Shown here: one piece after another, positions 6,874 to 60,000 of the stretch | Numbering within the stretch: position 1 is the stretch's first letter | Layout of the letters: every line of letters starts with the position of its first letter | Sequence record: OR836606.1 | Length of the DNA stretch: 64,000 nucleotides | Strand: one strand, 5' to 3' | Notes under the pieces: model-generated | The model's input: the letters and a program-made list of their open reading frames with translations, nothing else | Database searches by the model: none | Told to the model about the DNA's origin: nothing | Translations under genes and position numbers: made by a program

Positions 6874-8431
6874 TTATTCTATATAACTTTCTATATCTAC
6901 TTCATTTTGTTTAATTGTCATGTCATGGAAAGATTTCATTGAGCTTGTTACAATAGCTTGAGCCACTTGGTTGACCAGTAGACCAATATTCTCAATTCCT
7001 AATTTATAAGGTAATTCTCCCGCACATTTACTACAAATATCTTCATTAGCACAATACATAGGACTTCTAAACTCTAATACTTTACCCATATAATCATCAA
7101 CATTTTCAGGAGTTAACAAAATTAATTGACCCGATCTCGCATTGTTATCTTTGAAATATCTATACATCATTAATGATGCGTTTGACTTGTCTAATGTCAA
7201 TTTAAGAAAATGATTCGTTCTACAATCCGAACCTTTTTTATCTAAAACTGTTGTTTGAAAGGCTGACATCAATTGCTTGGCTTGATCTAATTTAATTTTT
7301 CTGTATTAGTACAATACAGATAAGACTATATCTTCTAATGTAATATATTTAGTCGTTGAACAACTTGTATTAAGTTGATGCTGATTAATCTAATAAGATA
7401 CTTCCAGCAATTAATATTATTTAATGTGAGCATCAAGTTTACCCACCTTCTTGAGTCATTTATGTTAACTATATTAAAATAATACAGATCAGACTATATC
7501 AAAAACTCTATATGAGCTTAATTATATTTAGTCGTTGAACACTATTTTTAGTGATGCTGATTAACTTAATAAAGGATCTCAGCAATTAATAATTTTTCGT
7601 ATATTATATTACTATAATAAAGGGCATTCATATACCTAGTGCACGTCCAGCTGAACCAGCAGTCATGACATCTCCAAACATATAAAGTTCATTAGGATCA
7701 ATTCCTTCAGCTAGTGAGCTTTTAGCAATTCTAATTTTACTTGGATCAGCAAAGTTTTTATTGGCTCCACGAATCAATGCAGTTAATTTATAGTTATTAC
7801 CGAATGAACCACGTGAACCACTATCATAAATATCTAAATCGGCTAAACCTTTTAATTCTTCTTTACTTAATTTAATTAATTCTTTTTCAATAGCAGATAT
7901 TGCGTTTAATTCTTCTCCAGAAGTATTCAACTCTTTTTCATATTTAACTAATAATTCTTCTTTCTTTTGTTTAACCTTATCAGTAGCAGTCATCATTGTA
8001 GTAGTTAAACTAGAATTAATAAAACTAGCTATAGAGAATCCTAACCATTGTAATTTATCAATGTAATCTGACATTTCTTGTGTAGTAATAATATCATTGA
8101 GTAATAAGTTTGATAAATCAGATTGAAGCTTACCAATTCCAGAACCACCCATATCGTGATTCATATATCCTATAATTGGCCCAATTTTATTATCTAAAAT
8201 AAATTTATTAAATATATATCTACCTACAGTAGTCTTTTCATCTTTTTTATTATAAACTAAATCTTTTTTTAATGTAAATTTATCTGATGGATTATACATT
8301 GGTTCTGTATTCTGTCTAAAGGCAAATAATTCTTTTAACTTGTCTAATGTAATATCATCTTTACCAACACTTAATAATGTAGATACTTCTTTTTCGTTAA
8401 GTGTTTTATTCTCATAATTCATATTAGCCAA
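6874..8431 (-). CDS. rpoC: RNA polymerase beta-prime C-terminal subunit (probably virion RNAP), spliced, 408 aa
   Basis: Exons 8431-7634, 7456-7441 and 7286-6874 total 1227 nt and are in frame. Junctions read AGRALG|TQEGGY|QAKQLMSAFQ (bridge-helix-like region). FRSPMYC...ICSKC Zn motif. Confidence 0.9.
7287..7440 (-). ncRNA. In1: mini group I intron, 154 nt
   Basis: P1 GUGGGU/GCUCAC with U-G at the 5' splice site; core AAUUGCUG..AAUCAGC..UUCAACGACUA..AAGAUAUAGUC; terminal G. Confidence 0.9.
7457..7633 (-). ncRNA. In2: mini group I intron, 177 nt
   Basis: Junction GGT|ACTCAAG; P1 GGU/GCC; P2 with GUAA tetraloop; same core motifs; ends AAAUG. Confidence 0.9.
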
Positions 8432-8970
8432 TTTATTTTCACTTCTTTCATTATTTTATTCATATTTAGATGTTATTGAGCATTTTATAATTTTTATATA
8501 ATTAAACAATGTATATGAAGTTAATAGTTATTTTTATATTAAATATTTAATTGTATTAATTTAATAAAGATAATATAAATAGTCAATGATTTATATTAAA
8601 TTAATATAAATTACAGAAATAAATTATGTAAAAACTATAAATTTTTATAATTATGTGATAAAAAATTTGAAAATGCCCGGAATATTATAATTATATTATA
8701 ATAAAATTATAATAATAAATATATTATTCTTATAATATATTTATATAAATTAAAATATTATGAGGGGATAGTACACATTTTTATTTCATAAAAATGTATT
8801 AAGAAAATAACGAACGAAGTGAGTTATTTTATTTATATAAATCCAATTAAAATACATAACAATAATAATCAAAACTATTGTATATAGGAAATTTATTGAA
8901 TAATATTATAAAATAAAAATAATATAAATATATTAATCAATAAAATTAAATACGGAAAGGAATGGCATAA

Positions 8971-11900
8971 TTGAAATATCTTAATAGATTAAAAAATCTT
9001 AAATTCTATTCAATATCTGGATATAAAATTAAAGCTATTGATGAAGAAATCGAAGATAAGAAAAAAGATCAGTTAGTTATTTATAAAGGTTTTAAAGAAA
9101 ATTCATTTACTGATTTTTTAAATAGTGGATTATTATATCATCAGAATTTTAAGAATATCTATATTCCGAGATTGTATAGAACTAGAAATAGAAGAACTAG
9201 ATTATTAACAAATATAACAGATTATCAAAAAGAGATTAAATCTAAATCTTACAAACAGTATAGAGTTGAAAGAAATGAGAAATTATTTAAAGGTAGAAAC
9301 TATATTGTTGATTCAACTAAATTTATTGATTTAGAAGATAAATCATTAATAACTAGAAATTTTAATACAGTATTGGATTCAATTAAATCAACTTTTAATT
9401 CTTTAAATAATGCAGAAGATTACAATAATTTATTATATGTAATTAATGTTGATGGGTATAATAAGTCTTCTCAAGAAGCAATTAGACCTAATACAAAAGA
9501 TTTCATGTCAAGCTTATTCATGATGATTAAGAATCAAGAGGAATTACCTCATGGTGAAAATCAAAATATTAATTTATTATTTGTCTCATTAGATAATGGA
9601 ATAATGTTTAAATTTGATTATAAAGATTATAATAAACTTAATATGAGACTTAGACAAAGATTAAGAAGAATCATTGATACTAATACACAAGCATTAGATA
9701 CTGATGAAATTAGTAAAGTTGAAGATGATGACAATACTGAAGCTGTAGATGGAGTAATTAAAAAGAAAGCATTTGATAATGTAGGAACAATTGATCCTAT
9801 CGAAGCTCAGAACGATGAAGCTGAATATGAAAATGATGAACAGTTAGAAAAAATATCTAATAAAATAGATTCTACAATAAGTTATATTAGATCATTAGAC
9901 AATACTGAAATGGATGTTGATGATGAATATAATATAGCTATGATAATTGAAAAAGAATTAAATAATAATAAAGATTTAATTGATATTGATACTGAAACAT
10001 TATATTCGGATGTATTGGATAAAAATGATTCATTTAAATCAATTAAGAGAAATATTAAAAATAAATCTAGTATTGGCGATGAAGCACTTAAAAATACTAA
10101 AAAGATATTAGCTTTATCCAAGAAACAAGATGAATACCTTAATGATTTAGAGGATTTTAGCTTTTCTGAAGATAAATTAATCGATAGAGAAATTAATGAA
10201 AATATTAATAATATTAATGAAGAGACTATTAATAATATTGCTTCTAATGATTTTGATGTTTCTTATATGCAAAAAACATTTAATAAAGACTTTATTGATA
10301 TAATGAAAAGCTTTAATGACAATGAAGATATTCCGGTATTTATTAATAAAATGAATATTGAAGATAATTCAGATAGTCAATCATTAAAAAATACAGTTAA
10401 AGTTCAATTTAGAAGTCCAGACGGTTTAACTCATAATGTTAAATTTGATGTTCCTAAAGTTATTGACGGTAAGTACATGAAGCTTAACGGTGGGAAAAAG
10501 ATATTAACTAAACAGTTAATGATGTGGCCAATCGTTAAATATAAACCGGATTGTTCATAACAGTCCACTTTTATAGCAATATGAAAGTAAAAAGAATATT
10601 AATTGCTGAAACGGTTTTATTAAATTAATCAGCATCAATTATTATTAATTGTTCAACGACTAAATATATTCACTCTTATTGAGAGTATGATATAGTCTGT
10701 GCTCTAAATTGATAATTTAGAGATTGTATAAAATACAGATAAAAAATTCATATCAGAATTTCTCTTAACATATTTTTATAATATGATTAGGAGGTGAAAT
10801 TAAATGATAAACAAAAACGGAAAATTAGTTAAATCTTTCAAAACTAGAATATACCCAAATCAAGATCAAATAAATTATTTCAATAAATGTTTTGGTGTAA
10901 GAAGAAAAATATGGAATATGGCTTTAGAAGACTATCAAAATAAAGATGATGACGCTCAATTTAGCGGATTTGATTATCAGAAAAAATTAAATAATGAAAT
11001 TTATGAATCTGGTAAATATCCCTATCTTTATGAAGTTAATAGCATGGTTAGACAAGAAGCTTTAAAAGACTTAGATGAATCTTTTAAAATATATAGAAAT
11101 GAACAAAAGAAAGCTAGAAAGTCTAAAGATGCAATTGACACTGAAAAATTTAAACCCAAGTTTAAAAAGAAAAAACATTCTAATGAGTCATTTAGATTTA
11201 TGGTTAAAGATAAGAAATATTTACCTATTAGATTTTTATCTAAGAAATGGATAAAAATTTCCGTAATGAAAGGAATTAAACCTTTTATAATCAAATCTAA
11301 AGAATCAATGAAGTTTATTAATTCTAATAACCATAGATTTCTCACTTACACTATAAGCAGAAAGAATGAAAAATATTATATTTCTGTAACTTATGAGATA
11401 AACAATTATAAGAAACAGAGATTGAATAATGATTCAATTGGTATTGATATGGGTATGAAAACACCATTAGTATGTGTAGATTCAAATGGTCAAACATTTG
11501 AATTTAAAATCCCACATAACTTATGGAAACAAGAAAGAAAAACTGAGAAATTGCAAGCAAAACTATCAAGTAAGAAATATTATTCAAAATCATATTACAA
11601 AACTTTAAAACAATTAAGAAAATCTTATAATAGAGAGTGTAATATATTAGAAGATTATAGAGATAAAATCACTAATTGGTTAGTTAAAAACTATAAAGTG
11701 ATTAATATTGAACCATATAGTCATAAAGCTTCTAATAATTTAAGAAATGCTCGTAGATCTAATAGAAGATTTGGCAAATATGATTTCCTAGAAAAATTAA
11801 AGTATAAGATTTTACAATATGATAATGAATTGAATATAATTACTAAAAAGAAAACTACACAAACATGCTCATCATGCGGTTATGTAAGAACTAACGATGA

Positions 11901-14900
11901 GAAACTTGTCATTGGCGATGATATTCATGATTGTCCTAAATGTAATGTAGTTCTTGATAGAGATTTAAATGCGGCTAAAAATATTCTAGATTTAAAATAT
12001 GTTTAATTAATTTCACAAAATAAAAGATATGAGAGTCGCCTGCGGTCAGCGGGAGACGATAAACGGGTGATAAGCTAATGTCTGATTAGCTTTACAAGGA
12101 GTACAGAGGTACCTCTATACGTTAGTCACTGAGCCAAGTGTATTTTATACAAGATCTTGCCTTTAGATTTAATTATTTAAAATCAAGATTTAACAAGACA
12201 GACAGTATGGATTACAACTAACTATAATAAATTCATTATAGAAAAATTTGGTTATAAAGAAAATGCTGAAACTGAATGGATCAAGAAAGTTATTGAAGAT
12301 GACCAAGTTATAGATTATATTGAAAATAAATCTAACTTATCTGTTAAAAAAGGTAATGCTTCTTTAATCAATAATAAATATGTAACTTCAGTTATTTATA
12401 ATAGCTTATCTAGAAATATATTAAATTTCCAAGATGACACTAATGTACTTGAATTTAATCAAAGAAGTTTATTAGCGATGATTTCTGATAGTGCTAGTTT
12501 ATCTAAAATTGATTATGATCAAGATAAATATTTCCCTATTGGTTATAATATTAATAAATCTAAATTAATATTAGCAGATAAGACAGAATCTGTTATGTAT
12601 GAATGTAGTAAGACTAATATTAAGTCAATGGAAATGAATATATTTGATTACCTTATTGATAAATTAGACAATGAAGTTGACTTTGGTGTTATTGATAAGA
12701 AATTCAGTAAGAATATTCAGGCTAATAAGACTATGGCATTTTCACGTGTTAAAATTACTAATAAATTAGTACCTACAATTTTATTATTAGGTTTCTATAA
12801 AGGTTTAACTAGTATTCTTGATCTTTATGAAGTTGATTATAAATTTACTACTGAGAATGAAAGAATTAGTATTCATGATAAAAAGAATAAAATTAAATTC
12901 CAAGATGGTTATTTAATATACTCTACTGATAAATTAAGATATGATTTATTAATGTCTGGATTAACTGTATTGCCTACATCACAATACAATTTCAGTGATT
13001 TTGAAACTGAAACACCTTACTTAGAATATTTCAATGATAAATTCTACAGTCGTAATGTTGGTAAAGGTATCAAAAATACTATGGATTTAGCAATGGATCC
13101 TATTACTAAAGAAGTATTAAGGGATTTAAAACTTCCTGATAATATGGTTGAATTATTACTATTAGCTAATACGATGTTAGAAGATGTATCAGCTAGAGAT
13201 CATAATGATATGGGAATTTATCGTGTACGTGGCCCAGAACAAATTAATGCATTATTATATAAAATGATGGCAAATGCTTATAAAGAATATTCAGATTCTT
13301 ATAATAATAAAAATCCTAAGAATATTTCAGTTAAACAAGATCAATTAATTAAAACTATTATGGAACAACCTACAGTGGATGAAGTATCTGATTTAAACCC
13401 TAACTTAGAAATAGATAAGATGACTTCTGTTACATTTAAAGGACCTGCTGGACGTAACTCTGAACAATCATATGAACCTGATATTCGTTCTTACGATGAA
13501 AGTATGCAAGGTATATTAGGAATAAGTACACCTGACAGTAATAAGGTAAATTACTTGCCCTTAATTACAGTAATGTAATTCAATGAAAATTTATTAATTG
13601 CTAAAAATCTTTATTAAGATGATCAGCATCACTAAAAATAGTGTTCAACGACTAAATATAAATTCACTTATTATAAGTGTAAGATATAGTCTAATCTGTA
13701 TTAGATTATTATAGAATAATACAAATGAGGTATTGTCAGACAACTTTCATATGATACACAAATTAAATCTACTCGTGGTTATACTGATGGTAGTAAAAAA
13801 GATGTAAGTGATACAGCTTTATACACACCATTAGAATTATTAAATCCATATACTAGTAGACATGCGGATATACGAAATGAGGTAAGTTCGCAATAAAATT
13901 ATTTAATTGCTGGAAAGCTTTATTAAGTTAATCAGCATCAGTTAAAGACTGTTCAACGACTAAATAATAATTACCATTTATATGGTGAAGATATAGTCTA
14001 ATCTATATTAATTTAATATAGAATAATAAAAATGTCACCTCGTATAGGAATGACTGGTATTAAAATGAATGCCCTTTATTATAGTAATATAATATACGAA
14101 AAATATTTAATTGCTAAGAATCTTTAATTAAAGAAATTAGCATCAAATTAATACAATTTGTTCAACGACTAAATAATATTATACTTATTTAAGTATTTGA
14201 TATAGTCTGATCTGTATTAAATTAATACAGTTAACATAAATGACTCAAGCTAAGCATTTAATTGCTACTAAAACAAATGACCGTCCATTAGTTGGTTCCG
14301 GTGTAGATAAATCTTTAGCCTACCAAATTTCAGACACATTTGCTTTTAAAGCTAAAGAAGATGGAAAAGTAACTTCTATTAATGAGAAAACAGGATTAAT
14401 GATTGTTGAATATATTAATGGAGATAAAGATGTAATTGATATATCTGAAAAACTTGCTAAAAACTCTAATGGCGGATTTTATCAAAATAATAAACTTACA
14501 CCGCAATTTGAAGTAGGTAAGAAATTTAATAAAGGACAAATATTAGCTAAAAATGATAATTACTTTGCAGGTTCTGGTAGTAATAATGATATTCAATTCA
14601 CTGCTGGTAAATTATCTAAAGTTGCAGTAGCTAGCTCATATGGTATTATAAATGCCTTTCATTATAGTAATATAATGTATAAAAAATATTTAATTGCTGG
14701 AAAGTCTTTATTAAGACAATCAGCATCATTAATTTATAATGTTCAACGACTAAATAATATTATACTTAATTAATATGTATTTGATATAGTCTAATCTGTA
14801 TTGATTAACTCTTAATGCAGTTAATATAAATGACTTATGAGGACAGTTCTATTATTTCTAATAGTATGTCTGAAGCTATGTCAACTAAAGTTACTATGAA

Positions 14901-15591
14901 GAAAACAGTAAATTTAGCTTCCAATACGAATATTCAATATATTGTAAAAGAAGGTCAAAATGTACGTACAGGAGACCCATTAATGATATTTGAGAATTCA
15001 TTTGATGATGAAGGTATCGGTTCTTTATTAGATAAAATTGGATCTGAATTTGAACAAGAAATCCAAGATATTTCTAATAGAGCTGTTAGATCTAAATATA
15101 CAGGCGTAATTAAGAAAGTAAATATCTATTATAATGATGATATTGAAAATATGTCTCCTACATTAGCTAAATTGGTTAATAGTTATATTAATAAATCTAA
15201 GAATAAATATAAAGAATATAAAAATGCAGTTAAAGGTAACAAATCTACATTACCTGGATTAGATGTAGATATTCCTGCAGTTGAAAAAATCAATAATGAA
15301 AAAATTAAAGGTGAAAAAGTTGATGGTGTTCTTATTGAAATCTTTACAGAATATGAAGATGATATGAGTATCGGTGATAAGATTAGTTTCTATGGGGCGT
15401 GTAAAACGGTCATTGCTGACGTTACTCCACCTGACGAATCCCCTTATGCAGAATATAGACCTGATGAAGAAATTGAAGCTATATTCTCTCCATTAAGTAT
15501 CGTGTCTCGTATGACTACAGATATATATCTCATGTTGTTTACCAATAAAGCACTCATAGAGCTTAAGAGAAAAGTTAAAGATATGCTTTAA
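8971..15591 (+). CDS. rpoB: RNA polymerase beta subunit (probably virion RNAP), spliced from 6 exons, 1417 aa
   Basis: Exons 8971-10551, 12202-13547, 13728-13869, 14035-14058, 14243-14644 and 14833-15591 total 4254 nt and are in frame. Junctions: KYKPD|TVWITT, NKV|GIVRQLS, RHAD|SPRIGMTG|TQAKH, SSYG|TYEDS. Also GDKIS and SPLSIVSRM motifs. Confidence 0.9.
10767..10796 (+). promoter_or_regulatory. Late-type promoter motif and RBS inside In3, upstream of tnpB
   Basis: AACA-TATTTT-TA (10767-10778) matches the AR9 late consensus AACA-N6-TA; AGGAGGTG at 10789-10796. Confidence 0.55.
10804..12006 (+). CDS. tnpB: TnpB RNA-guided endonuclease (intron-encoded)
   Basis: N-terminal HTH (KTRIYPNQDQ); RuvC D/E/D in IGIDMG, INIEP and DRDLNAA; Zn finger CSSC..CPKC. 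Confidence 0.93.
   Translation: MINKNGKLVKSFKTRIYPNQDQINYFNKCFGVRRKIWNMALEDYQNKDDDAQFSGFDYQKKLNNEIYESGKYPYLYEVNSMVRQEALKDLDESFKIYRNEQKKARKSKDAIDTEKFKPKFKKKKHSNESFRFMVKDKKYLPIRFLSKKWIKISVMKGIKPFIIKSKESMKFINSNNHRFLTYTISRKNEKYYISVTYEINNYKKQRLNNDSIGIDMGMKTPLVCVDSNGQTFEFKIPHNLWKQERKTEKLQAKLSSKKYYSKSYYKTLKQLRKSYNRECNILEDYRDKITNWLVKNYKVINIEPYSHKASNNLRNARRSNRRFGKYDFLEKLKYKILQYDNELNIITKKKTTQTCSSCGYVRTNDEKLVIGDDIHDCPKCNVVLDRDLNAAKNILDLKYV
12007..12201 (+). ncRNA. Putative omegaRNA scaffold of In3 TnpB
   Basis: GC-richer stems directly after tnpB (GTCGCCTGC/GCGGGAGAC, AAGCTAAT/ATTAGCTT, AGAGG/CCTCT), ending at the intron 3' splice site. Confidence 0.6.
13548..13727 (+). ncRNA. In4: mini group I intron, 180 nt
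   Basis: Junction AAG GT|A GGT; IGS GCC; core motifs; ends AAAUG. Confidence 0.88.
13870..14034 (+). ncRNA. In5: mini group I intron, 165 nt
   Basis: P1 UGCGGAU/GUUCGCA; P10-like GAGGU pairing with 3' exon ACCUC; core motifs. Confidence 0.9.
14059..14242 (+). ncRNA. In6: mini group I intron, 184 nt
   Basis: Junction GGT|ACTCAAG; P4 GCUA/UAGC; sister of In2. Confidence 0.9.
14645..14832 (+). ncRNA. In7: mini group I intron, 188 nt
   Basis: Junction GGT|ACTTATG; IGS AUGCC; core motifs. Confidence 0.9.
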
Positions 15592-15599
15592 TATTATAT

Positions 15600-15628: not shown

Positions 15629-15695
15629 TATTTTTAATAAATCATTATTTTAACACATTAATATTAATAAAATAAATAGAAATGAGGAAAATATA

Positions 15696-17277: not shown

Positions 17278-17283
17278 TTTTTT

Positions 17284-39626: not shown

Positions 39627-41642
39627 TAACCAATTTCCCCCTCTAATTCTTTAATGATATCATCAGAAGCTTCAATAAGAGAAGGTAAACCATGAAACTC
39701 TTGAGCAAAAGCAACACTGTCTTGACTATTAAATTTACTTACGAATTCAGTATTAAAATCATAATTATCTTTATCTTGCTCATATTTAGGTACCGTTATT
39801 CTATCTTTATCAAGAATATTCATCTTACCTACATGTCCTTCAGGTGTTATATTAAATGCTCTAATAATAGATGGATATAGAGAACTTAAGTCAAAGTCAC
39901 AAACATTACTAAATAATCTATTAGATCTAATATCTTTACCTTTAACCAATACGTCTCCATTACGTTCGATTAACATCATATCAGCTACAAATCCGCCACG
40001 AATTTTATCAGCATTAGGATCCGATAATAATTTTGAATGATTATTGCTTAATACATATCCTTGATTTTCAAAGAATACTGAACTACGATTTCTTAAACAA
40101 ATAGTTTTCTTAAGTGCTTTACTAGGTCTTGTTCTAGTCATGTCTACAATAGAGAATAATAGATCAAACATATTAGTGTTATGTTCAATCAATGCAGCTA
40201 ATACAGTATCCTTAATATTATAAAGAATAAATGTATAGTAATCTCTAAAATGTAAATCAGAGATAGAACCTTCATATACATCTTTAGTAACTCCTGCTTC
40301 TTTTTCTCCAATATCATTTAACTTAACTGATTCCAAAGCACCATTGGGCTTATTAATATTTGCATATAACGCTAATTGGTCAATCCAATTAGTATAAGAA
40401 TTAGTCTCAAATGTAGAAGATCTATTAGCCATATCAGTAGCATTTTTATCTAATTTATAATATGCTTTTTTATCTTCAAATTCTTTAGAACAGAAATAAT
40501 CTGCAGGATTTTCTCCATTAGCTCTAATACGTTCAAATATTGCAGGAAAGTCATAATCTAGCTTTTATATTTATTAAATATAAAATAGACTATATCATAC
40601 TCATTAATATGAGTGAATATATTTAGTCGTTGAACAACTCTTATTAAGTTGATGCTGATCATTCTAAAAAGAACGTTCCAGCAATTAATATTCTTTTAAT
40701 GGAACCTATTATCAATTCCATGCAGTACATATGTCAGGCTTACTAATTTCATTAATATAATATAAGAAAGATTTAATTACTTGCATTTCTGTATCTAATT
40801 CATATATCTCAAATTCTAAACCTAAATTTTTACCAATTTCACTATTTTCATTATTATAAATTTCATTTAAGTTTTTAATTAATTTATCTTGATCTTCCAT
40901 AGTTTCTTTATAAGTGTCAGTGTCATATTTAAGAGCAAATGTTAATACTTTTTTCTTACTCCAATCCACTACAGTTATAATATTTATCTCTGCCTCAGCT
41001 TTAAGCGGGTCCGGGACAATTTGTATTAAAAGTAATACAAATTAGACTATATCTTCTTAGTAATATATTTAGTCGTTGAACATTAAATTTTTAATGATGC
41101 TGATTATCTTAATAAAGAATTTCCAGCAATTAATATTATTTTATCTGAGCTACCTTTAACCCAGTTACTTGAGATCCATCAACCTCAATATCGAATAGAC
41201 ATATATCTATACCAACTTTACTGTCTAAATTCTTTTTAATATACTCATTGATATTATAATCTTCTATATTTATATCAGAACCATGAGCATTATTTAATAA
41301 ATGGAAATCTTTTAGTTTTCTATATTCTTGCCAATTACCTGACTTCATAATTCTATCGTATTCTGCTTTATCTTGAGAATTACCAGCTTCTTTAACTACT
41401 GATTTGATAATATCTTTATGCTTACAAATAACAGTTCTTACTTTATCTTTTTCAATAGAACCTACAATTTTATTAGGAGGTAACCAATGTTCATCTTTAG
41501 TTACATAATAATGCATCATAGGATCTGTTATTTCCATATGTTTTTTAGTACCATCCTCTTCTTTAACTACCATTACTACTTTTTCTTTACCAGAAGCAGT
41601 TTCTTTTTTATTTAAATATGTTGATTTAATGAATCTTCCCAT
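39626..41642 (-). CDS. Split family-B DNA polymerase, N-part (exonuclease plus motif A), spliced, 573 aa
   Basis: Exons 41642-41159, 41016-40715 and 40561-39626 are in frame. Junctions DIEVDGSQVTG-F|PDP and TAWN|LDYDFP; motif A DFDLSSLYPSII. Confidence 0.9.
40562..40714 (-). ncRNA. In8: mini group I intron, 153 nt
   Basis: P1 AUGGAAU/GUUCCAU; core motifs; terminal G. Confidence 0.92.
41017..41158 (-). ncRNA. In9: mini group I intron, 142 nt
   Basis: P1 CUGGGU/GCUCAG; no P2; core motifs; terminal G. Confidence 0.92.
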
Positions 41643-50751: not shown

Positions 50752-51390
50752 TTATTTAAAATTTTCTTTAACCGCTAACTTTTTTATTTCTTTTTCATCT
50801 TCTACCTTTTCTAAAATCTCATAAAGTTCATTAAAAGTATATTCATTTAAAATTAAATCTTTTCTAAATTCTTGACTGGTTATGAAATCGACATTATCTT
50901 TTTTTGAATTAACTGTGTATACTAATAAACTTATATCTTTTTCGTTATTAAAAAGATTAACTATATTTGAAATTAATTCGTATTCTATATTATTTATATT
51001 TTCAATTTGAATATAAGTTACATATGAAAATACATTACCGCTAATTAAAGTTTTAAAAGGTCCTATATTTTTACATTCTTTATCAATATTACGTAATAAT
51101 GAAAATACAAAATATAATTCAAAACAACCATTACCTTTATCAGTTATATCTATATAAAAACCTCTAGTTCTATAATAGGTATTTTTGTCCTTTATCAAAA
51201 TACCATCATTTCTTAACGAAAATGAGCCATTTTCATCTATCTTATTTTTAATATTGTTAGAATTAAATAACTCTTTAAATAATTCAATATTTAATTCTTC
51301 TTTACTAGTATCTTTTTTAACGGAAACTATGTCACCTCTATCATCAATCTTATAAAAATCATGATTTTTGATATATTGATTTATACTCAT
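50752..51390 (-). CDS. Paralog family member
   Basis: C-terminal LEKVEDEKEIKKLAVKENFK. Confidence 0.8.
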   Translation of the reverse strand: MSINQYIKNHDFYKIDDRGDIVSVKKDTSKEELNIELFKELFNSNNIKNKIDENGSFSLRNDGILIKDKNTYYRTRGFYIDITDKGNGCFELYFVFSLLRNIDKECKNIGPFKTLISGNVFSYVTYIQIENINNIEYELISNIVNLFNNEKDISLLVYTVNSKKDNVDFITSQEFRKDLILNEYTFNELYEILEKVEDEKEIKKLAVKENFK

Positions 51391-51406
51391 TAAGTTATTC
51401 TCCTTT

Positions 51407-52015
51407 TTATTTAAAGTTTTCTTTAGTTAGATATTTTTTAATTTCTTTTTCGTCTTCTAACTCTCTAAAATATGCATGAGGTTCAAATATATCAATACCA
51501 TTTATAAAGATTTTAATATTTCCATTATTTTCTTCTTTAAGCATTTCATCTAGCAAATTAGATAATTTATCTAAATCATTTTCATGTTCATCATAACCTA
51601 TAATATTTTCTTTATGAAAATTTTTCATCATGATTATACTGACACCGAGTGAATTCTTATCAACTTCTAAAAGTTCTTTATCCGCATGTCTACTAATAAA
51701 AGCCCTTAATTGCAAAGTTACTTTATTATCTTTAATTTTTGCATATGAGAATTCTAAGAATTCTACTGGAAGATTCTTTCTAACTTCATTATACATATTG
51801 CTGAAATATATATTTTCACTATCAATTAATTCAAAGAGTAAACTTAGATTATAATAAAGGTCATCATTTAAACTATAGTAATCTAAATTTCTTTCTATTA
51901 ATTTTTTATAATAGAGTTTATTTATCTTATCTTTAATATCACTTTCATCTTTACTAATTATAAAAAGCTCATTAATATCTTTATTATAATAGAATTTATT
52001 TTCTTTTAAAATCAT
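51407..52015 (-). CDS. Paralog family member
   Basis: FYYNKDINELFII...FRELEDEKEIKKYLTKENFK. Confidence 0.8.
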   Translation of the reverse strand: MILKENKFYYNKDINELFIISKDESDIKDKINKLYYKKLIERNLDYYSLNDDLYYNLSLLFELIDSENIYFSNMYNEVRKNLPVEFLEFSYAKIKDNKVTLQLRAFISRHADKELLEVDKNSLGVSIIMMKNFHKENIIGYDEHENDLDKLSNLLDEMLKEENNGNIKIFINGIDIFEPHAYFRELEDEKEIKKYLTKENFK

Positions 52016-52122
52016 ATCTTTTCCACTCCCTTAATTAGATTAATATAGAGATAATGAATTAATATAATTCATTATCTCATTTTTATAATATATATTTACA
52101 TACATTTTTCATCTAAATAAAA

Positions 52123-52153
52123 GAGATAACGGACAATTATAGTCCGTTATCTC
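52123..52153 (-). terminator. Terminator after the rpoC N-part gene
   Basis: GAGATAACGGAC / GTCCGTTATCTC. Confidence 0.75.
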
Positions 52154-52165
52154 ATCTTTTTAAAT

Positions 52166-54712
52166 TTATTCTTTAGTTAAAGAGTATAAAGCTTGTACCA
52201 TATTATTTATGATAATTAGACTATATCTTCTTAGTAATATATTTAGTCGTTGAACAACTTATATTAAGTTGATGCTGATTAATCTAATAAGATACTTCCA
52301 GCAATTAATATTATTTATTGAGAGCATACAAGCATGTTACTCTCATTACCCAAATTACGTACTGAATTACCAGTGTAGTTTAGGTAGTTAGTTTTCTTAT
52401 TAAGAAGTTTATTAGCTTCTTTATTAGCCTCTACAGTCCAGAGAGATCTGATAGAAATCATATCCATTTACGTTATCTATATTAAGATAATATAGATCAG
52501 ACTATATCTTTACTTTAATAAGCATATTATATTTAGTCGTTGAACACTATTTGTAGTGATGCTGATTAAGATAATAATCTTTCCCAGCAATTAATAATAT
52601 TTAAATACGGCAATATAAATTACCGTCAAACGTTTATGTTATCTATAATAAATGATATCATAGACCAGACTATATCATCATCTCAATTGAGATATATTAT
52701 ATTTAGTCGTTGAACAACTTATATGAAGCTGATGCTGATTGCTCTAATAAGAGTTTTCAGCAATTAATAATATTTTCATTCTTAAATCACTTTAAGAAGC
52801 GACTTTTTCAAATCGGCACCTAACGCTATTTAATTTATAATTAAATTTGGACTATATCATAAACCTAAATATTAGGTTCCCTCACACTTCGGGAATTCAT
52901 TTCCCTACTCTACTCACTTCGTTATAGTATTTCAACTATACTTATTCTCTATATAAGAGTTACATTTATTGTTTTCGATAGTCTCTGAACGTTTATCCAT
53001 CATGTGGATACTTCGCTGCTAGACTTTCCCATTATTAAATACCCTTAGCATTTTCAGCATAGGTCATCAAAGAGATTTTTTCTGTCTTTCGACTGCATGT
53101 CACGCTATCCATTACTGGCATACGTTGTAGCTCTCTAAGCATTAGGGTTTACAAGCAATTCATAAGGTATTTTTTATCCTATATTACTATAAGACTGGAG
53201 CGTAAGTTACTCCGGCATAACTGTTGTGTATAATAGCGGTATCTATAAATACATCTTCATCAACAGGATATTCATGAACAACTTTAGGATAATCTTTAAG
53301 TACAATATCGTCTAAAGTAATTTCAGGAATTGTATCAACTGTAGTCAATATTTTAATTTTGGCAGGTGCAACATTCAAGAAATTTTCGCAAACTATATTA
53401 AATTAATACAGATCAGACTATATCATTACCTACTTTTAGGTATATTATATTTAGTCGTTGAACAAGTTTAATTGACTTGATGCTAATTAACCTATTAAAG
53501 TCTTTTAGCAATTAATAATATTTTCATTCTTAAATCACTTTAAGAAGCGACCAGTGTATTAATCGGATATCTTGAATAAACCACATGCTTATCTTCACAT
53601 ATTTCTGTAGCAGCTATATAAAGTAAATCAATTACAGTAAAAGTTCTACCTAAAGTATTTTCAAATAATTTAACTTTATGACGTTTACCTTGTCTATCAT
53701 TTACATATATAGGACTAAATCTTTCATTAGGATCCTTAATAAAGAATTCTAACATATTCTTAATAGCTTTATCATCAAACTGTTCATATACTTCTTCTAA
53801 TGATAATTCATTTTCATCAGTTCCAGTAGCGGTTTGGAAGGCATCTTTGTGGATTTCAATAAAATCGATAATGTATTTGCTAAAGAAAGGTAAGAATAAA
53901 GTAACTAATTGAGTTAATGGTACCCCTAACTGACCAAATTCAATTTGCATTTCATCCCATTTATTTGAATTAATCTTAGGTGAAGAAATAACTGAGCGAG
54001 TACTGTTATCTACCGTCTTACCTAAAATATTTCTTTGCATCATACCAGTTTTACCTGATAGTTCTCCTGAAGTTAATTTAACGTATATTTCAAATAATTT
54101 ATTTTGAATATTATATTTAGTCGTATTAGCTACAAAGTCAAATGAATTAAAACTAATTGAATCTACAGATCTTAAGATGCTTGCATACATATCATTTATT
54201 TCTTCAGTATCTTGAATTTCCCCTGAAGTTTCATTAGGATTAAAGTCACGATAGAAAGCAGGTATTACGAGCCATTTATCTGTGAATATTCTATCTTTAG
54301 GAGTATTTTTAAGCATATCAATTTTTTCATTTCGGATACGAGAATCATTTTTTCTAAATTTAAGATTTTCATAATTATCGTATAAGAAATTTAATCCAGT
54401 TTCACCATTTTCATCTGGAACTAATTGTCCTTTCTCAATTTTAAAGTAATCAGAACCTTGAATACATAGATCTATATTCTTATCTAATTCTCTCATAGCT
54501 TTATAAGCTACAGGATTCAAGTATTTGCCACCTAAATTAATCCAACCTATATTATTCTTTCTTTCATCAGTACCTATTAAACCAAATATTTCATATGAAA
54601 ATAAACCATCTTCTTTAGGTAAAGTTCCTGAATCAAAGAAAATAGGATTAGTAACTTCTTTAGCTCCATAAGCTGTAATAACTTGATCAACATTAACCAT
54701 ATCTATTTTCAT
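52166..54712 (-). CDS. rpoC: RNA polymerase beta-prime N-terminal (catalytic) subunit, probably virion RNAP, spliced from 6 exons, 503 aa
   Basis: Exons 54712-53562, 53388-53210, 52825-52812, 52630-52622, 52464-52339 and 52198-52166 total 1512 nt and are in frame. They yield RYPI|ENFLN, HNSYAG|ALGAD|FDG|DMISIR and NLGNES|VQALYSLTKE. GKTVDNSTRSVIS motif. Confidence 0.88.
52199..52338 (-). ncRNA. In10: mini group I intron, 140 nt (shortest in the window)
   Basis: P1 GAGAGU/GCUCUC; P10 CUUGUAU with 3' exon GUACAAG; core motifs. Confidence 0.92.
52465..52621 (-). ncRNA. In11: mini group I intron, 157 nt
   Basis: P1 ACGGU/GCCGU; junction GGT|GAT. Confidence 0.92.
52631..52811 (-). ncRNA. In12: mini group I intron, 181 nt
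   Basis: P1 CGAU/GUCG with GAAA loop; junction GAT|TTT. Confidence 0.9.
52826..53209 (-). ncRNA. In13: full-size ORF-less group I (IA-type) intron, 384 nt; 5' site probably after GGAG
   Basis: GAAUUGCUUG..UAGCAGC..UUCAGAGACUA..UGAUAUAGUCC with P7 extensions; IGS CUUACG-CUCC; 5' boundary uncertain by 1 nt. Confidence 0.8.
53389..53561 (-). ncRNA. In14: mini group I intron, 173 nt
   Basis: P1 CGAU/GUCG; junction CCG AT|C GAA; P4 GCUA/UAGC; sister of In12. Confidence 0.9.
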
Positions 54713-54761
54713 TTAATACTTCACTTCCAATCTAATTTTATAAAAAAATAAATATATAAAA

Positions 54762-54790
54762 GCCATGTTAAGCTATAAACTTAACATGGC
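54762..54790 (-). terminator. Hairpin terminator
   Basis: GCCATGTTAAG / CTTAACATGGC. Confidence 0.7.
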
Positions 54791-54798
54791 AATAATTA

Positions 54799-55551
54799 TT
54801 AATTAACTAAGCTGTTACTCATATAACTAAAATAATTTAAATCTATTTCTTTTTCTTTAGCTTTCATAATAGTTGCTTCATCTAATTTTTGATTATATCC
54901 TAATGAAGGAATATCAATACCGGTCTGCATAACATTATCACAGTTCATTATAATATCTTTAATATTACTAACCTCGTCTTCATATATTCTAGTAACATAC
55001 CCTAATGTGTTAATTACATCTGATTTCTTTTCATCTGATTCAAGATAATAAATATCAACCTTTTCCATACTTCCCCTAAATAAAGTTTTTAAAAATCTTT
55101 CTTTAGATTTTAAGTTATTGTCAGAAGTCTTAGTTACAATTGACAATTTATTCATTAAAGGAGTATTAATTGTATATGACAAACTTTTAGCTAGATTTGT
55201 TGGCTGTAATGTATCGTATAAATCTTTTTTAAATACAATTTCTTCGTGAAGTTTATTTCTAGCTTCATTAACTTCATCTTCAGAAAATCTTTCATAAACA
55301 TCTTTTCTCACTAACCATTGGTCAATATAATATTCAGGACGATTGAGAACTGTATTGTAATGAGTGCTATAATTATAATCTGGAGATAGTCTGAAAAATT
55401 GATTGTAATAATCAAAATCTTCATGCATTAATTGAACAATTTTAGGTGAAATATTCACTAAAACTTCATCGCAATCAACAACTATATGACCTGTATTCAT
55501 TTCGTTCTCTTTATACATATAATTAAAATTCTCCTTTGTCATAATCTTCAA
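54799..55551 (-). CDS. HAD-superfamily phosphatase, 5'(3')-deoxyribonucleotidase-like
   Basis: Motif I IVVDCDEVL; later KSDVI..IYEDE motifs. Confidence 0.6.
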   Translation of the reverse strand: MKIMTKENFNYMYKENEMNTGHIVVDCDEVLVNISPKIVQLMHEDFDYYNQFFRLSPDYNYSTHYNTVLNRPEYYIDQWLVRKDVYERFSEDEVNEARNKLHEEIVFKKDLYDTLQPTNLAKSLSYTINTPLMNKLSIVTKTSDNNLKSKERFLKTLFRGSMEKVDIYYLESDEKKSDVINTLGYVTRIYEDEVSNIKDIIMNCDNVMQTGIDIPSLGYNQKLDEATIMKAKEKEIDLNYFSYMSNSLVN

Positions 55552-56863
55552 TGAATCTATTTTTTAATTCTTTTATTTTATCTTCATGAAATTTAGTTTG
55601 TCTAATTTTAAAAGGTTTAGTGCTGTCAAGAAAATCTGTTGAATGAATATTTTCTTCATCAACTAAAGTCATATATTTAGGATTAGTTGTATTTAGTGCA
55701 TCATATAAATCAAATTTATTCTTTTTCATAAGATTGTATTTATCTTGAGTCATTAAAACTGAATAATAAATATCCTTTAATTTAACTGATCTTCTGTAAT
55801 TAGAAGGATCTTGTAAACCAGGTGTTTCTTTAGTATTAGTTATAATTCCTTTACCATGATACTCCTTACCAATATAATAAACTAAATAAATGAACCCCAT
55901 ATTATCTTTAACGCTAAATAATCTATATCCATCTTTATTTTCATCAAATACCTCATAAATATTCCAATCATTAATTACTCTACGCTTAGCATAATAGGGT
56001 CTATTTTCTGGTTTTAAATGATATGGTTGTCCTCCAATACTAAGTCGTTTCTCATATTCTTCTTTTTCAAGTTGTTTAATATAAGTTTTACTAAATTTAT
56101 CCAAAACAATTGAATGTTCTTCATCAAAACTTTCATAATTATAATTAAAAGGTAATACAATCCTAAAAGTTTTACTTGTACATCTATATAAAACTTTACT
56201 TAGATTTTTTTCATTTAATTTAATTTGGATTTCATTAGTTTCTTCATTATAATTAATATCTTCATCATTTATAGAATATAGACTTTTAGTAATTACATTA
56301 AATGTAATTGGATTAACGTCTTCAATCATATTAATAATGATTAAATTTCTTTCATAATCTATATATGCTAACATGTTATACATATCTAAGTTAAGTGAAT
56401 CAGGGTCATACTTATCCTTTGTTTTATGAGGATCTCTAGCCCATACCTCTAATTCTCCCGCATTTTTAATTTTTAATTTAGAATTATCTTTTAATGTGAT
56501 ATCTTTAAGAAAATCTTTACCAATATGATTTCTACCAATCTCATTTAATAATATTGCTAGTTGATGTTCAAATAACTTAGGTATATCTTTCTCTAAAGTA
56601 AAGAAATAACAATCATTATTAAAATTATTTTTATTGCTTTTACGATATTCCTTTAATAAATCAACTAACTCTTTATCTTCATTAAATCGAATAATATTAT
56701 CAATAATAAATCTATTTTGATCAAATCTATAGAACCATGTCCCATTATCATCCATTTTTCTTAACTTAGCCGGTATTTTTCTACCATTTTTTCTGTATAA
56801 ATTCAAATTTTTACTAAATACATCTGACTGTTTTGCCATAGCATTAATACACTCCATTTTCAT
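55523..56863 (-). CDS. Hypothetical protein
   Basis: 446-aa ORF (start probably at MAKQ) behind an early-type motif at 56909-56924. Confidence 0.7.
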   Translation of the reverse strand: MKMECINAMAKQSDVFSKNLNLYRKNGRKIPAKLRKMDDNGTWFYRFDQNRFIIDNIIRFNEDKELVDLLKEYRKSNKNNFNNDCYFFTLEKDIPKLFEHQLAILLNEIGRNHIGKDFLKDITLKDNSKLKIKNAGELEVWARDPHKTKDKYDPDSLNLDMYNMLAYIDYERNLIIINMIEDVNPITFNVITKSLYSINDEDINYNEETNEIQIKLNEKNLSKVLYRCTSKTFRIVLPFNYNYESFDEEHSIVLDKFSKTYIKQLEKEEYEKRLSIGGQPYHLKPENRPYYAKRRVINDWNIYEVFDENKDGYRLFSVKDNMGFIYLVYYIGKEYHGKGIITNTKETPGLQDPSNYRRSVKLKDIYYSVLMTQDKYNLMKKNKFDLYDALNTTNPKYMTLVDEENIHSTDFLDSTKPFKIRQTKFHEDKIKELKNRFIEDYDKGEF

Positions 56864-57050
56864 TTATTTAAAAATGTATCTTAAAAAAGATACATTTCTA
56901 TTACAATTTTATAATATATATTTTAACATAAATTAAAAATTTATGCAAGAAATTTTATATGAAAGTTGATAAATTTTTCTAATTATATAAAATCAATTAT
57001 TTTATCTGAATACATACCAATATTTTCCAATATGTATCCAGATAAATTAT

Positions 57051-60000
57051 TTAGAATTTAATCATATTAGATACAAATGAACTATTTGAAGATTCCAATA
57101 CTCTAACACCAATAGATTCAATAATATCTTTACCTGGTTTAATATGATCTTCAATCATACTATCATAGTCAATAAAAGGTCTAAACTCTTCAGGAATTGT
57201 ATTACCTTCAACTGCAATTACATTTAAACCGTTTTTAACTAAACTTTCATTCTTAAATACTTCTCTAAATCTATCTAAAGTATCTTCATCAGTTATCTTA
57301 TTTTTAATATCTCCAAATGTACTAATATTCAATTTAACTGCTAATATCTTAGCAGGTAATGCTATTTCTTTTTCTGGGAACATTATATTCCATGCTAAAG
57401 CAGCTCTATATGCCATTTGAGAATAAGGGTCTTTATATACCTCAGCATTATTAGCTTTAAACGGTTTTAAGAATTCGATTTCTCCATTATCTAATGATTT
57501 CTTAATCATTTCTTCTATATCTTTAAATTTACGTATTATCTTAATACGATCTACACCGGTTTTATTTTCTAAAATATCTTTTTGTAATATTTCAGTAAAT
57601 AGTTCTCTAATACGTTTATTAGTATTAACTTTTCTAATAGCCATACCTTTAACATCTAAATCTGGAGGTTGAATTAAATTACCCTCTTGTTGAATTACTG
57701 ATGATGCATAAGTTTTCTTTTTATCAGTTGTTAATTGTTTATCAAGTAAAACATTTTTATTAGCTTTATTAAATTAATAAAGATTAGACTATATCTTATA
57801 CTTATATTAAGTACATTTATATTTAGTCGTTGAACTTAATTTCTTAAGCTGCTGATTTAATTAATGAACTATTCCAGCAATTAATAAATTTATCTTTCTG
57901 TATATCGCTATACAACGGAGCATTAACTTGATAATACTCATTTTTCATTGATATTAAACCTAAATGTTCTTCCTCTAATCCTACATCTTTACAGAATCTA
58001 TAGTAAGACAATTCTAATAATTTAGTTATTTGATAGTTAATAATAGATATATTACTTACACGTTGTTCTAATTTATCCTCTAAACCATTCTCTGCAATTG
58101 GAAAATCTTCAGGTTTTAAAGATTTAAATTTTTCGTATAACGGATCTAAGTGAACAAAGTTCATTTATGTTAGCTGTATCAAATATAATACAGATCAGAC
58201 TATATCTTCTTTAGAAATATATTTAGTCGTTGAACTTAATTTCTTAAGCTGCTGATTTGATTAATAAATCATTCCAGCAATTAATATTTTTTATTGACAG
58301 CAATTTTTTATCACAACTGTCAGTATCTATAGTTAATACGCTTCTACGTTTCTTGTAATTCATTCTATACATTCTATTATAATCTTGATAATTATATATA
58401 ACCCAATCTTTTAATATTTCAAATAATTCATCTAATAATGGAATCATATCTTCAGGAGGATCATTTGGATCTAAGAAATCTTCTCTGCCAGTCATTTTAC
58501 TAATTTTATTATCAAATATATCGGTATGATCAATTAACCCAAATAAATTATTTTTGAAATATACTTTATTTTTATCTTCTTGACTTAATTTACTAAATAC
58601 TTCTTCTAACTTAAGAAAATCTTCTTCACTATAATCTTCTTCAACATTAGAAACTAAACCTTCTAAAATTTCTTTATCAGTTGGAATTGATTTTATCTTA
58701 ATATCATGATCTTCATATTTTTCACTAATTATTCTTAATATATAATGATATATTTCATCAATCTTCATGAAAAAGATTTTACCGCCAATAAATCTTTCTA
58801 AAGCTATCGCTGAAGTAGTTACAATATCAACTGCTATATAAATTCGTGAATTTAATTTAATTAATTCGAATTTATTCGACTTCGTCATTACTTTTACTTA
58901 CTTTGCACTTTAAGTTTTTCGTTATAAACTACTTCAACATAAAGTGTCAACCAAAGCAGAGGTTAAAGCTCTTAAGTCATCACATTTGGACATTCAAGAG
59001 AATTTAAATCTAGTTAGCCTGCCCAACAAAACGCTTACCGTACATTTTGAGGTTGACAGCAGCGTTATAATCTCTATCCATTTTATTTCCACAATCACAC
59101 TTATACCATCTATCTGATAACTTCATCTTATTTTCTTTAGTTAAGACTTGACCACAATTAGAACATAATTGAGTTGATGGGAACCATCTATCTGCTACAA
59201 TAATAGTATTACCATTGCTTTCAGCTTTTTGTTTTAATAAAGTTCTGAATTGTCTCCAATTCATTGCAGAAATAGATTTAGACAAATTTCTATTTTTAAT
59301 CATATTTGAAACTTTAAGATCTTCAATTGTAATATACTGATAATTTTTAATTAAGTTAGTAGTTATTTTATGAAGATAATCTTTTTTAATGTTATTAATT
59401 CTCATCCATATTTTTTGTATTTTGGTTTTCAATACATTGTATTTGTTAGAACCATAAACTTTACGAGATAATCTTTTTTGATAGTACTTAATCTTATTGT
59501 ATAGTGGAATCAATTTATCATTTAATGAATGATATTTCTTAAATTTACCGAAATCATCATTAATGATAGCTAAATCTTTTACACCTAAATCAATACCAAC
59601 ATGGCTATTGTTATGAATTAAGCTCTTATTATTATCAACTTTCATTACTATTGAAGCGAAATATTTTCCAGCATATTTAGATATAGTAACTTCTTGAATG
59701 GAATTATAATTAAACGGGATAGATTCTTTCATTTTAATTAATGAATTAATTCCTTGAAGTTTTAATTTATTATTTTTATCGCCTTTAATTTGTAATGAAT
59801 AATTATTCTTCTTATAGAACCTTGTACTTAATTTAGAATGTTTTTTAGATTTAAATCTCGGATACTTACCGTAACCTTTCCACATCATATTAAAAGCTTT
59901 ACCTAAATCTTCAGTTGCTGTGTCCATAACTTGAGATATTTGATCTTTTTCCCAATCTTCTTTACATTTTTTAAGTTCATCACGAACTTTCCTATGTGTT

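Follow-up and report, generated by a model that had tools for sequence, protein, structure and literature searches.

Staphylococcus phage LY01 and its interrupted polymerase genes

The DNA analysed here, hereafter the window, is a stretch of 64,000 nucleotides (nt) of sequence record OR836606.1, which megablast matched at 100% identity to nt 124001–188000 of Staphylococcus phage LY01, a 259-kb phage originating from a pig farm. LY01 belongs to a clade of AR9-like jumbo phages together with MarsHill, Madawaska, Machias, S6, PALS_2, DC4, SA1, PB50 and AH12. In the window, whose GC content is 19–33%, three virion RNA polymerase (vRNAP) subunit genes and two DNA polymerase subunit genes are interrupted by 14 short elements without an open reading frame (ORF), which are very probably group I introns; all five genes are uninterrupted in phage SA1. 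The annotation of OR836606.1 presents the exon fragments of the five genes as unconnected hypothetical proteins and marks no introns, so that the public gene models of both LY01 polymerases are wrong.

The borders of the elements were set by aligning the window to the intron-less SA1 genes, with the exons abutting as in SA1. The 14 ORF-less elements thus delimited span 7287–58315 and measure 140–188 nt, the smallest being 140 nt (52199–52338, minus strand) and 142 nt (41017–41158, minus strand), with a GC content of 18–27%. Their R motif, GTTCAACGACTAAAT, has 15 exact occurrences in the window, 14 of them in the ORF-less elements and the 15th in a 1650-nt element that contains an ORF. When up to three mismatches were allowed, 18 matches were observed against 3.1 expected, a number reached in none of 100 shuffles.

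Alignments revealed four strings common to all 14 elements and invariant or nearly so, namely AATTGCT(G/A), AAT(C/T)AGCA, GTTCAACGACTAAAT and GATATAGTCT. In every case the last base of the 5′ exon is a U that forms a U·G pair with the G of an internal guide sequence, within a P1 helix of 3–7 base pairs (bp), and the last base of the intron is a G. The guide sequences were assigned by an automatic finder, and four introns for which it chose wrong, A-U-rich partners were reassigned manually, guided by the alignment and by their siblings. A first-pass annotation of this DNA had given the same number, span and size range, and had described the four core strings, the U·G pair at the 5′ junction of each P1 and the terminal G as common features; the SA1-based borders yielded identical numbers, and each of these features was present in 14 of 14 elements.

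The elements are listed below, followed by three larger insertions that lie outside the set of 14. Scores are given for RF00028, the Rfam group I intron model, and for R1, a family covariance model that we built from 15 window cores.

I7347, 7287..7440, minus strand, 154 nt: vRNAP beta′ mid-domain gene; no P2, no P8; P1 GUGGGU/GCUCAC, P10 of 6 bp; R1 120.4 bits; RF00028 34.2 bits, E 4e-7
I7526, 7457..7633, minus strand, 177 nt: vRNAP beta′ mid-domain gene; P1 GGU/GCC, P2 with GUAA loop, P8 present; R1 130.9 bits; RF00028 24.3 bits
I13643, 13548..13727, plus strand, 180 nt: vRNAP beta gene; P1 GGU/GCC, P2 GUAA, P8 present; RF00028 37.3 bits; SA1 junction 26/30 nt
I13951, 13870..14034, plus strand, 165 nt: vRNAP beta gene; P1 GCGGAU/GUUCGC, no P2, P8 present; RF00028 59.5 bits, above the gathering score; Madawaska ortholog 97% identical
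I14160, 14059..14242, plus strand, 184 nt: vRNAP beta gene; P1 GGU/GCC, P2 GUAA, P8 present; R1 124.6 bits; no RF00028 match at E ≤ 0.01; SA1 junction 29/30 nt
I14741, 14645..14832, plus strand, 188 nt: vRNAP beta gene; P1 GGU/GCC, P2 GUAA, P8 present, P9 extended; R1 109.6 bits; RF00028 match partial, 25.1 bits
I40621, 40562..40714, minus strand, 153 nt: DNA polymerase exonuclease-subunit gene, at WN^LD motif; P1 7 bp, no P2, P8 present; SA1 junction 27/30 nt; Madawaska ortholog 97% identical
I41067, 41017..41158, minus strand, 142 nt: DNA polymerase exonuclease-subunit gene, directly after FDIE motif; no P2, no P8; P1 CUGGGU/GCUCAG; R1 103.4 bits; RF00028 30.3 bits, E 9e-6
I52241, 52199..52338, minus strand, 140 nt: near 3′ end of vRNAP beta′ N-terminal gene; no P2, no P8; P1 7 bp UGAGAGU/GCUCUCA, contiguous P10 of 8 bp, P9 of just 5 bp; R1 102.1 bits; RF00028 30.9 bits, E 1e-5; MarsHill counterpart 96.4% identical
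I52531, 52465..52621, minus strand, 157 nt: vRNAP beta′ N-terminal gene, inside catalytic motif DFDG^D; no P2, short P8; P1 ACGGU/GCCGU, P10 of 7 bp; RF00028 43.4 bits
I52701, 52631..52811, minus strand, 181 nt: vRNAP beta′ N-terminal gene, inside GAD^FDG; P1 CGAU/GUCG, P2 GUGA, P8 present; R1 139.3 bits; RF00028 54.6 bits, above the gathering score
I53449, 53389..53561, minus strand, 173 nt: vRNAP beta′ N-terminal gene; P8 present; P1 CGAU/GUCG, with the same P2 as I52701; RF00028 39.9 bits
I57821, 57752..57935, minus strand, 184 nt: DNA polymerase catalytic-subunit gene; P1 GAGU/GCUC, P2 GCGA, P8 present; RF00028 32.8 bits; Madawaska ortholog 94% identical
I58221, 58162..58315, minus strand, 154 nt: DNA polymerase catalytic-subunit gene, after the DTDS codons; no P2, no P8; P1 UGACAGU/GCUGUCA; RF00028 27.5 bits
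I10651, 10552..12201, plus strand, 1650 nt: same ribozyme core with a TnpB ORF
Intron b, 52826..53209, minus strand, 384 nt: ORF-less group I intron of another family
TnpB insertion, 58831..60741, minus strand, 1911 nt: DNA polymerase catalytic-subunit gene

Excision restores the host genes

Removal of the 14 introns and the three larger ones yielded five single ORFs collinear with their SA1 counterparts at 86–97% identity, three of them free of gaps. The ungapped genes encode the vRNAP beta′ mid-domain (408/408 amino acids (aa), 92% identity), the vRNAP beta′ N-terminal protein (503/503 aa, 97%) and the DNA polymerase catalytic subunit (632 aa, 87%), while vRNAP beta (1417 aa, 91%) aligned with one gap and the DNA polymerase exonuclease subunit (569 aa, 86%) with two. 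In the 30 nt around the joins, compared with SA1 without gaps, 20–29 of 30 positions matched at most sites. The intron-less orthologs of Madawaska gave a consistent picture: the exon join at the 140-nt I52241 is identical to the Madawaska empty site over 42 of 42 nt, the double join of I7347 and I7526 agrees at 35 of 39 nt, and, for the 142-nt I41067, the residues spanning the join recur in the product of the uninterrupted Madawaska gene. The first-pass annotation had claimed that removing the elements restores reading frames and conserved motifs in five genes, and had named intron-less orthologs as the comparison by which its joins could be checked; the SA1-collinear ORFs and the Madawaska sites bear out both the frames and the joins.

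The introns are located in the codons of catalytic motifs. Three lie within 36 nt of coding sequence around the GADFDGD motif of beta′, two interrupt the exonuclease subunit at FDIE and WNLD, and one follows the DTDS codons of the catalytic subunit, which we take to be motif C of family B polymerases. Adjacent introns are separated by micro-exons of 9 nt (52622–52630, downstream of I52701), 14 nt (52812–52825), 16 nt (7441–7456, between I7347 and I7526) and 24 nt (14035–14058, upstream of I14160). The 9-nt micro-exon, UUUGACGGU, encodes F-D-G and must act both as the P10 partner of its upstream intron and as the P1 partner of its downstream intron, so that the order of splicing around it may be important.

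The elements carry a group I intron core

A search of the whole 64-kb window with Rfam returned no group I match either at the gathering threshold or at E ≤ 10, which is an artefact of filtering, as short stretches do match. On stretches of 0.5–1.6 kb, RF00028 matched 13 of the 14 elements (E 3e-14 to 6e-4), 12 of them end to end and the 13th partially, with just two scores above the gathering score of 50 bits (I13951, 59.5 bits; I52701, 54.6 bits). The R1 model recovered the 15 window copies at 102–139 bits and 12 further copies in the Madawaska and Machias loci, and none in the SA1 loci.

The 27 copies from LY01, Madawaska and Machias served as the covariation set. Their P3–P9 structure had 98.0% of cells paired, compared with 77.8% in shuffles and 26–48% with slid partners, figures that are somewhat inflated by an alignment fitted to the model, although the slide controls use that same alignment. 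Both sides had changed in 24 of 37 base pairs. Strong covariation was found in P3, P5, P6, P8 and P9, while P4 and P7 were invariant, as expected of the catalytic centre. The helices P3–P9 follow the canonical order with a P3/P7 pseudoknot, with P8 missing in 4 of the 14 window elements and P2 in 7. In the G-binding site of P7, A-[C bulge]-GACUA pairs with UAGUC-U, invariant in the 27 copies, and the G-C pair beside the bulged base presumably corresponds to the guanosine site of the Tetrahymena intron.

The P7.1/P7.2 insertion, a trait of subgroup IA2, was not found between P3′ and J8/7, where 0–24 nt form one hairpin or none; the likeness to IA2 lies, we assume, in the similarity of the R and S elements, and draws further on the classing of IStron introns as IA2 (PMC4227781). 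Taking these observations together, we conclude with high confidence that all 14 are true group I introns, members of a single family whose core is similar to that of IA2 introns in phages. The first-pass annotation was thus right to read the elements as group I introns and their near-invariant strings as the P, Q, R and S elements.

A minimal architecture that lacks P2 and P8 in the smallest copies

The introns begin with P1 and, in some copies, a P2 with a GNRA loop; P3–P7 follow, then P8 where present, a short P9 and a brief tail before the terminal G. In the seven copies that contain P2, its loop is GUAA, GUGA or GCGA and P1 has 3–4 bp; in the seven that lack P2, P1 is extended to 5–7 bp, and some of these copies have a long P10 adjoining P1. 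P10 reaches 5–8 bp in the P2-less I7347, I52531 and I52241, but is weaker or mismatched in the P2-bearing copies. In I52241 the guide reads GCUUGUAU-GCUCUCA and would pair over 8 bp in P10 and 7 bp in P1. We also considered the GNRA hairpin as a candidate for P1; the SA1 junctions rule this out and identify the hairpin as P2.

P8 is retained in all seven P2-bearing copies, its stem mostly containing a CU:AG step, which fits a putative tetraloop contact between L2 and P8. Four copies, I7347, I41067, I52241 and I58221, lack both P2 and P8, and in these 7–8 unpaired bases (CUAAGAA and similar) link P3′ to J8/7. Counted from P3 to its last base, the terminal G, the smallest copy is only ~115 nt long. 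As regards the copies of 140 and 142 nt, the first-pass annotation was correct about the absence of P2, but its statement that they keep P3–P9 does not hold, as P8 is also missing. To our knowledge, P8 is a conserved part of the core in all group I introns described.

TnpB-bearing siblings and an intron of another family

The same core is found in the 1650-nt I10651 of the vRNAP beta gene, in which P1, a P2 with a GCAA loop and P3–P9 occupy 10552–~10740 (R1, 116.6 bits), and a TnpB ORF (10804–12006) lies between P9 and the 3′ splice site. The encoded protein contains OrfB_IS605 (1e-15), Cas12f1-like TNB (2e-16) and helix-turn-helix (HTH_OrfB_IS605, 2e-11) domains. I10651 is IStron-like, and it is possibly an RNA-guided homing intron.

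The insertion at 58831–60741 contains a second TnpB ORF (59010–60158) and a variant R motif, GTTCAACGACTATCG, at 60391. Its borders are ambiguous owing to an AG repeat; read as GGAG^...GCAG^, the junction restores the S-G-V-D of SA1 and would place a G at position −1. The 384-nt intron b lies in the GALGADFDGD region of beta′, has GTTCAGAGACTATCG as its R element and scores 27.2 bits with RF00028. A U at −1 combined with a terminal G would break the reading frame of its host gene, and only the reading G^U...AUAG^CG keeps the frame and also ends the intron in G. No homolog of intron b was found at the same site in relatives, the only match being a distant one in Listeria phage LPJP1. IStrons of group B have an unusual 5′ splice site in which a U·G pair is followed by a loop (PMC4227781), and the G at −1 read in intron b and in the 58831–60741 insertion agrees with that junction type.

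IStrons, whose introns are classed as IA2 (PMC4227781), combine a ribozyme with tnpA/tnpB of the IS200/IS605 or IS607 type. Published examples measure 482–2582 nt and come from bacterial chromosomes, apart from two in Clostridium botulinum phages (PMC4227781; bioRxiv 2023.11.20.567912). I10651 resembles them in the order of its parts, with the ribozyme first (5′) and TnpB last (3′) within the intron (PMC4227781; bioRxiv 2023.11.20.567912). In the window this combination is confined to I10651 and the 58831–60741 element; the 14 mini-introns differ in having no IS part, no ORF and no room for one.

Copy number and distribution

Across the whole LY01 genome, R1 identified 34 copies, all at ≥85 bits. 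Outside the window they include two runs of four introns, each run ~740 nt long (LY01 nt 40375–41102 and 232875–233615, both minus strand), in host genes that Pfam did not recognise; the neighbouring genes of these arrays likewise had no Pfam match. A blastn search of 50,697 phage records with the 140-nt intron as query matched only six Staphylococcus jumbo phages, LY01 (32 matches), Machias (29), AH12 (28), PB50 (21), Madawaska (12) and MarsHill (9), and found none in SA1, S6, PALS_2 and DC4. An earlier report on DC4 also detected no introns with Rfam (PMC10638138). That negative may be genuine, given that blastn finds DC4 free of copies too, even though default Rfam filters miss this family on long input.

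Which sites are occupied differs among LY01, Madawaska, Machias and SA1. Mini-introns alternate with ORF-containing introns, such that a site with a mini-intron in one phage may have an intron encoding an endonuclease in another. In Machias and Madawaska the nuclease-bearing members of the family encode HNH or other homing endonucleases; in LY01 they encode TnpB. Paralogs are 55–85% identical and orthologs 94–97%, which points to old, individually maintained copies rather than a recent burst. The empty sites of SA1 mostly still end in T, so that immunity of these sites does not account for the lack of introns in SA1. Introns with the same guide occupy sites that are alike only in the short complementary exon string, a pattern that fits target choice at the RNA level and also plain survival of compatible insertions.

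Beyond this clade, the exact Q...R...S arrangement, searched as a compound pattern, turned up in none of 185,579 bacterial and archaeal genomes and in 89 IMG/VR stretches, mostly from contigs of 200–400 kb. R1 gave 193 matches in these contigs and earlier huge-phage loci; the best 150 of these 193 represent 47 distinct sequences with cores of 115–182 nt, and P8 is missing in 7 of the 47. With borders that are unverified in both cases, one intron in IMG/VR contig 3300045988_180488 (L040) measures ~163 nt in total and another, in huge-phage locus L082, possibly ~136 nt. On the same 378-kb uncultivated phage contig, 3300045988_180488, some R1 matches span just 96–113 nt (11682–11777, 5040–5135 and 3580–3692), with P3, P7, P8 and P9 kept and the whole P4–P6 domain seemingly gone; these could be degenerate copies, split introns or alignment artefacts.

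A link between thermolabile introns and the failure of the clade to plaque at 37 °C was considered and rejected, since DC4, which has no detectable mini-introns, is also grown at 30 °C. ARAGORN found no tRNAs in the window. Positions 4285–4356 (plus strand) gave a weak, sub-threshold Rfam match of 36 bits to the Plastid-ycf2 leader and have a tRNA-like look; in the equivalent intergenic region, relatives are annotated with a pseudo-tRNA-Asn or a tRNA-Ser.

Relation to known introns

Introns in MarsHill, Madawaska and Machias had already been deduced from protein alignments alone (Korn et al., bioRxiv 10.1101/2020.12.14.422802), which bears out the remark in the first-pass annotation on intron-like inserts in Machias-like phages. 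Those introns belong to the same clade and the same genes, the vRNAP and DNA polymerase subunits, and partly to the same sites as in LY01; unlike the present analysis, that report defines no family or size class and offers neither a ribozyme model nor a copy census. In "Jug" gut jumbo phages, 2513 group I introns with a mean length of ~206 nt (covariance-model hit) have been described, 18.5 per genome (PMC12880540; bioRxiv 2025.08.10.669567), and splicing was seen in metatranscriptome reads for 37 of 76 (PMC12880540). Like LY01, these phages have essential genes fragmented by swarms of small introns, although they differ from it in host and phage clade. The Jug paper gives neither secondary structures nor exact boundaries and does not mention loss of P2 or P8. 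The IMG/VR contigs of 200–400 kb, possibly from Jug phages, contain the same Q, R and S strings and compact cores as LY01. Intron-rich jumbo phages, including the LY01 clade, were thus known before, and similar mini-introns occur in other huge phages. The novelty lies in an explicit description of the minimal architecture, in particular of P8 being lost along with P2, naturally and more than once, as well as in the family census and the link to TnpB-bearing siblings.

The IA2 introns of other phages (T4 td, nrdB and sunY, Twort, SPO1/SP82) resemble those of LY01 in interrupting essential genes of DNA and RNA metabolism at the codons of catalytic motifs, in their R/S-type core strings (GUUCAACGACUA..., GAUAUAGUCU), in the U·G pair at the 5′ splice site and the terminal G, and in the occurrence of ORF-less and endonuclease-bearing forms side by side. 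They are ~250–1000 nt long and keep P2, P8 and the peripheral helices P7.1/P7.2 and P9.1/P9.2, whereas the LY01 copies are devoid of peripheral helices of the P7.1/P7.2 and P9.1/P9.2 type and four of them also lack P8. As minimal catalysts with few peripheral elements, the LY01 introns are also comparable to the Azoarcus pre-tRNA-Ile intron (~205 nt, IC3) and to engineered sunY miniribozymes. The Azoarcus intron is GC-rich and thermostable and keeps P2 and P8 with tetraloop-receptor contacts, and the sunY miniribozymes are man-made.

Among natural introns far below 200 nt are also the degenerate 56–81-nt group I introns of fungal SSU rDNA, of which at least one reportedly undergoes group I splicing in vitro (PMC3160393). 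They have lost most of the canonical core, in contrast to the LY01 introns, which keep a canonical P3–P7 and the G-binding site. The literature on the smallest group I intron yielded nothing decisive, and the publication on the intron database names no lower limit of length. The suggestion in the first-pass annotation that the 140- and 142-nt elements could be the smallest natural group I ribozymes is unsafe, with cores of equal or smaller size in uncultivated huge phages and fungal introns of 56–81 nt on record (PMC3160393).

Proposed splicing pathway and alternative explanations

The identity, boundaries, structure, copy number and presence/absence polymorphism of the elements are direct observations from the comparisons above. 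We propose that the introns would be transcribed within the mRNAs of the five essential genes and then removed by the two-step group I pathway, in which free guanosine would attack after the U of the P1 U·G pair, and the terminal G would subsequently dock in the P7 G-binding site for ligation of the exons aligned by P1 and P10. The 14 mini-introns would represent the ORF-less form of a family that bears nuclease genes at the same or other sites, and the copies would be old residents kept functional by compensatory change. Our guess is that the copies with P2 and P8 self-splice in vitro, and, likewise as a guess, that the 140–154-nt copies without P8 depend on raised Mg2+, low temperatures, an RNA chaperone or another protein.

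Apart from the fitted alignment noted above, several points weigh against this interpretation. Splicing of the LY01 introns in vivo is something we infer from their position in essential genes, from micro-exons that would otherwise be untranslatable and, indirectly, from the exact matches to empty sites, and the copies without P8 could be crippled and reliant on help. The minimum free energies (MFE) of the two smallest introns are −19.3 and −22.8 kcal/mol (z = −0.6 and −2.2), and in all copies the native-like nested helices lie 7–20 kcal/mol above the minimum-energy fold. This distance makes unaided folding of the smallest forms doubtful as far as computed energies can tell, an argument that we consider weak. 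Sequence does not decide between self-splicing and dependence on a trans factor, and we regard it as rather unlikely that the 140–154-nt copies without P2 and P8 are fully autonomous self-splicing ribozymes.

The strongest competitor, to which we give somewhat less than an even chance, is that the introns, at least those without P2 and P8, are non-autonomous and have kept the core while a phage or host protein or an RNA chaperone is needed for folding. AU-rich mitochondrial group I introns need such folding helpers, and the LY01 family has a GC content of 18–27%, a P3 of 6 bp made almost only of A-U pairs, the unfavourable MFE z-scores and distant native-like structures just described, no peripheral stabilising elements and four copies without P8. 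However, no maturase-like ORF lies beside the introns, the long P1 and P10 of the smallest copies look like built-in compensation, and engineered miniribozymes derived from T4 sunY are active. The sole candidate helper examined, annotated in LY01 as a "cold shock protein" (LY01 nt 59368–59739, minus strand), was rejected as an RNA chaperone, since Pfam shows it to contain just an SNase-like domain (E 1e-8). As to how the ORF-less copies spread, they may have moved via RNA, by reverse splicing at a P1/P10 match, reverse transcription and genomic recombination, a route we hold to be considerably less probable than the need for a helper. It would account for same-guide copies at unrelated sites that have only a short complementary exon string in common: four introns with a GCC guide (7526, 13643, 14160 and 14741) follow GGU, two of these (7526 and 14160) share GGT^ACTCAAG in different genes, and two introns with a GUCG guide and identical P1–P2 (53449 and 52701) follow CGAU. 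Insertions must match the guide to survive, though, and selection alone yields the same pattern; the paralogs, at 55–85% identity, are old, and mobility by reverse splicing has never been directly shown (PMC3984707). The phage does encode a reverse transcriptase (also Korn et al.), but we rejected it as the driver of intron spread, as it is also present in the intron-free SA1 and belongs to a repeat-array system.

It appears improbable that the elements are instead DNA transposons of a non-autonomous, PATE-like kind, which would be IStron derivatives without an ORF that a TnpA-type transposase moves or TnpB retains, the ribozyme merely making the insertion harmless. ORF-less IStrons are known (PMC4227781), and LY01 has I10651 with TnpB in the IStron layout and a second TnpB element in a DNA polymerase gene. 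Against this, no TnpA was seen (for I10651, no dedicated TnpA search was made), the 5′ flanks vary (GGT, GAT, AGT, AAT) with no single target motif like TTGAT, the mini-introns are too small for an omega-RNA, and relatives at the same sites carry HNH or other homing endonucleases instead of IS parts. We give hardly any credence to the idea that the elements stay in the RNA and each gene is translated in pieces that then come together, even though AR9-like phages do distribute RNA polymerase subunits over several genes (Korn et al., bioRxiv 10.1101/2020.12.14.422802) and, in the LY01 record, the fragments stand as hypothetical proteins of their own. Exons of 9, 14, 16 and 24 nt between introns, inside GADFDGD and elsewhere, exclude expression as separate polypeptides; in addition, the fragments have neither starts nor ribosome-binding sites, and SA1 and Madawaska encode the same proteins uninterrupted.

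Implications for group I introns and jumbo phages

If the introns without P8 prove autonomous, P8 would be dispensable for group I catalysis, and these copies would rank as the smallest natural group I ribozymes of the canonical type, a ready minimal scaffold kept by selection in at least two unrelated lineages of huge phages. Splicing of the 140-nt forms on their own would redefine the minimal natural group I core and, were they self-sufficient, would offer a tiny scaffold for RNA circularisation, trans-splicing tools and folding studies. If a helper is needed, a phage or host splicing cofactor would await discovery in a tractable system. Standard annotation misses the family, as the empty Rfam result for the whole window and the mis-annotated exon fragments illustrate, and a family-specific covariance model would therefore repair gene models across the phage clade. 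The mini, TnpB-bearing and HNH-bearing forms at the same sites provide a natural series in which to follow how nuclease genes invade and leave introns.

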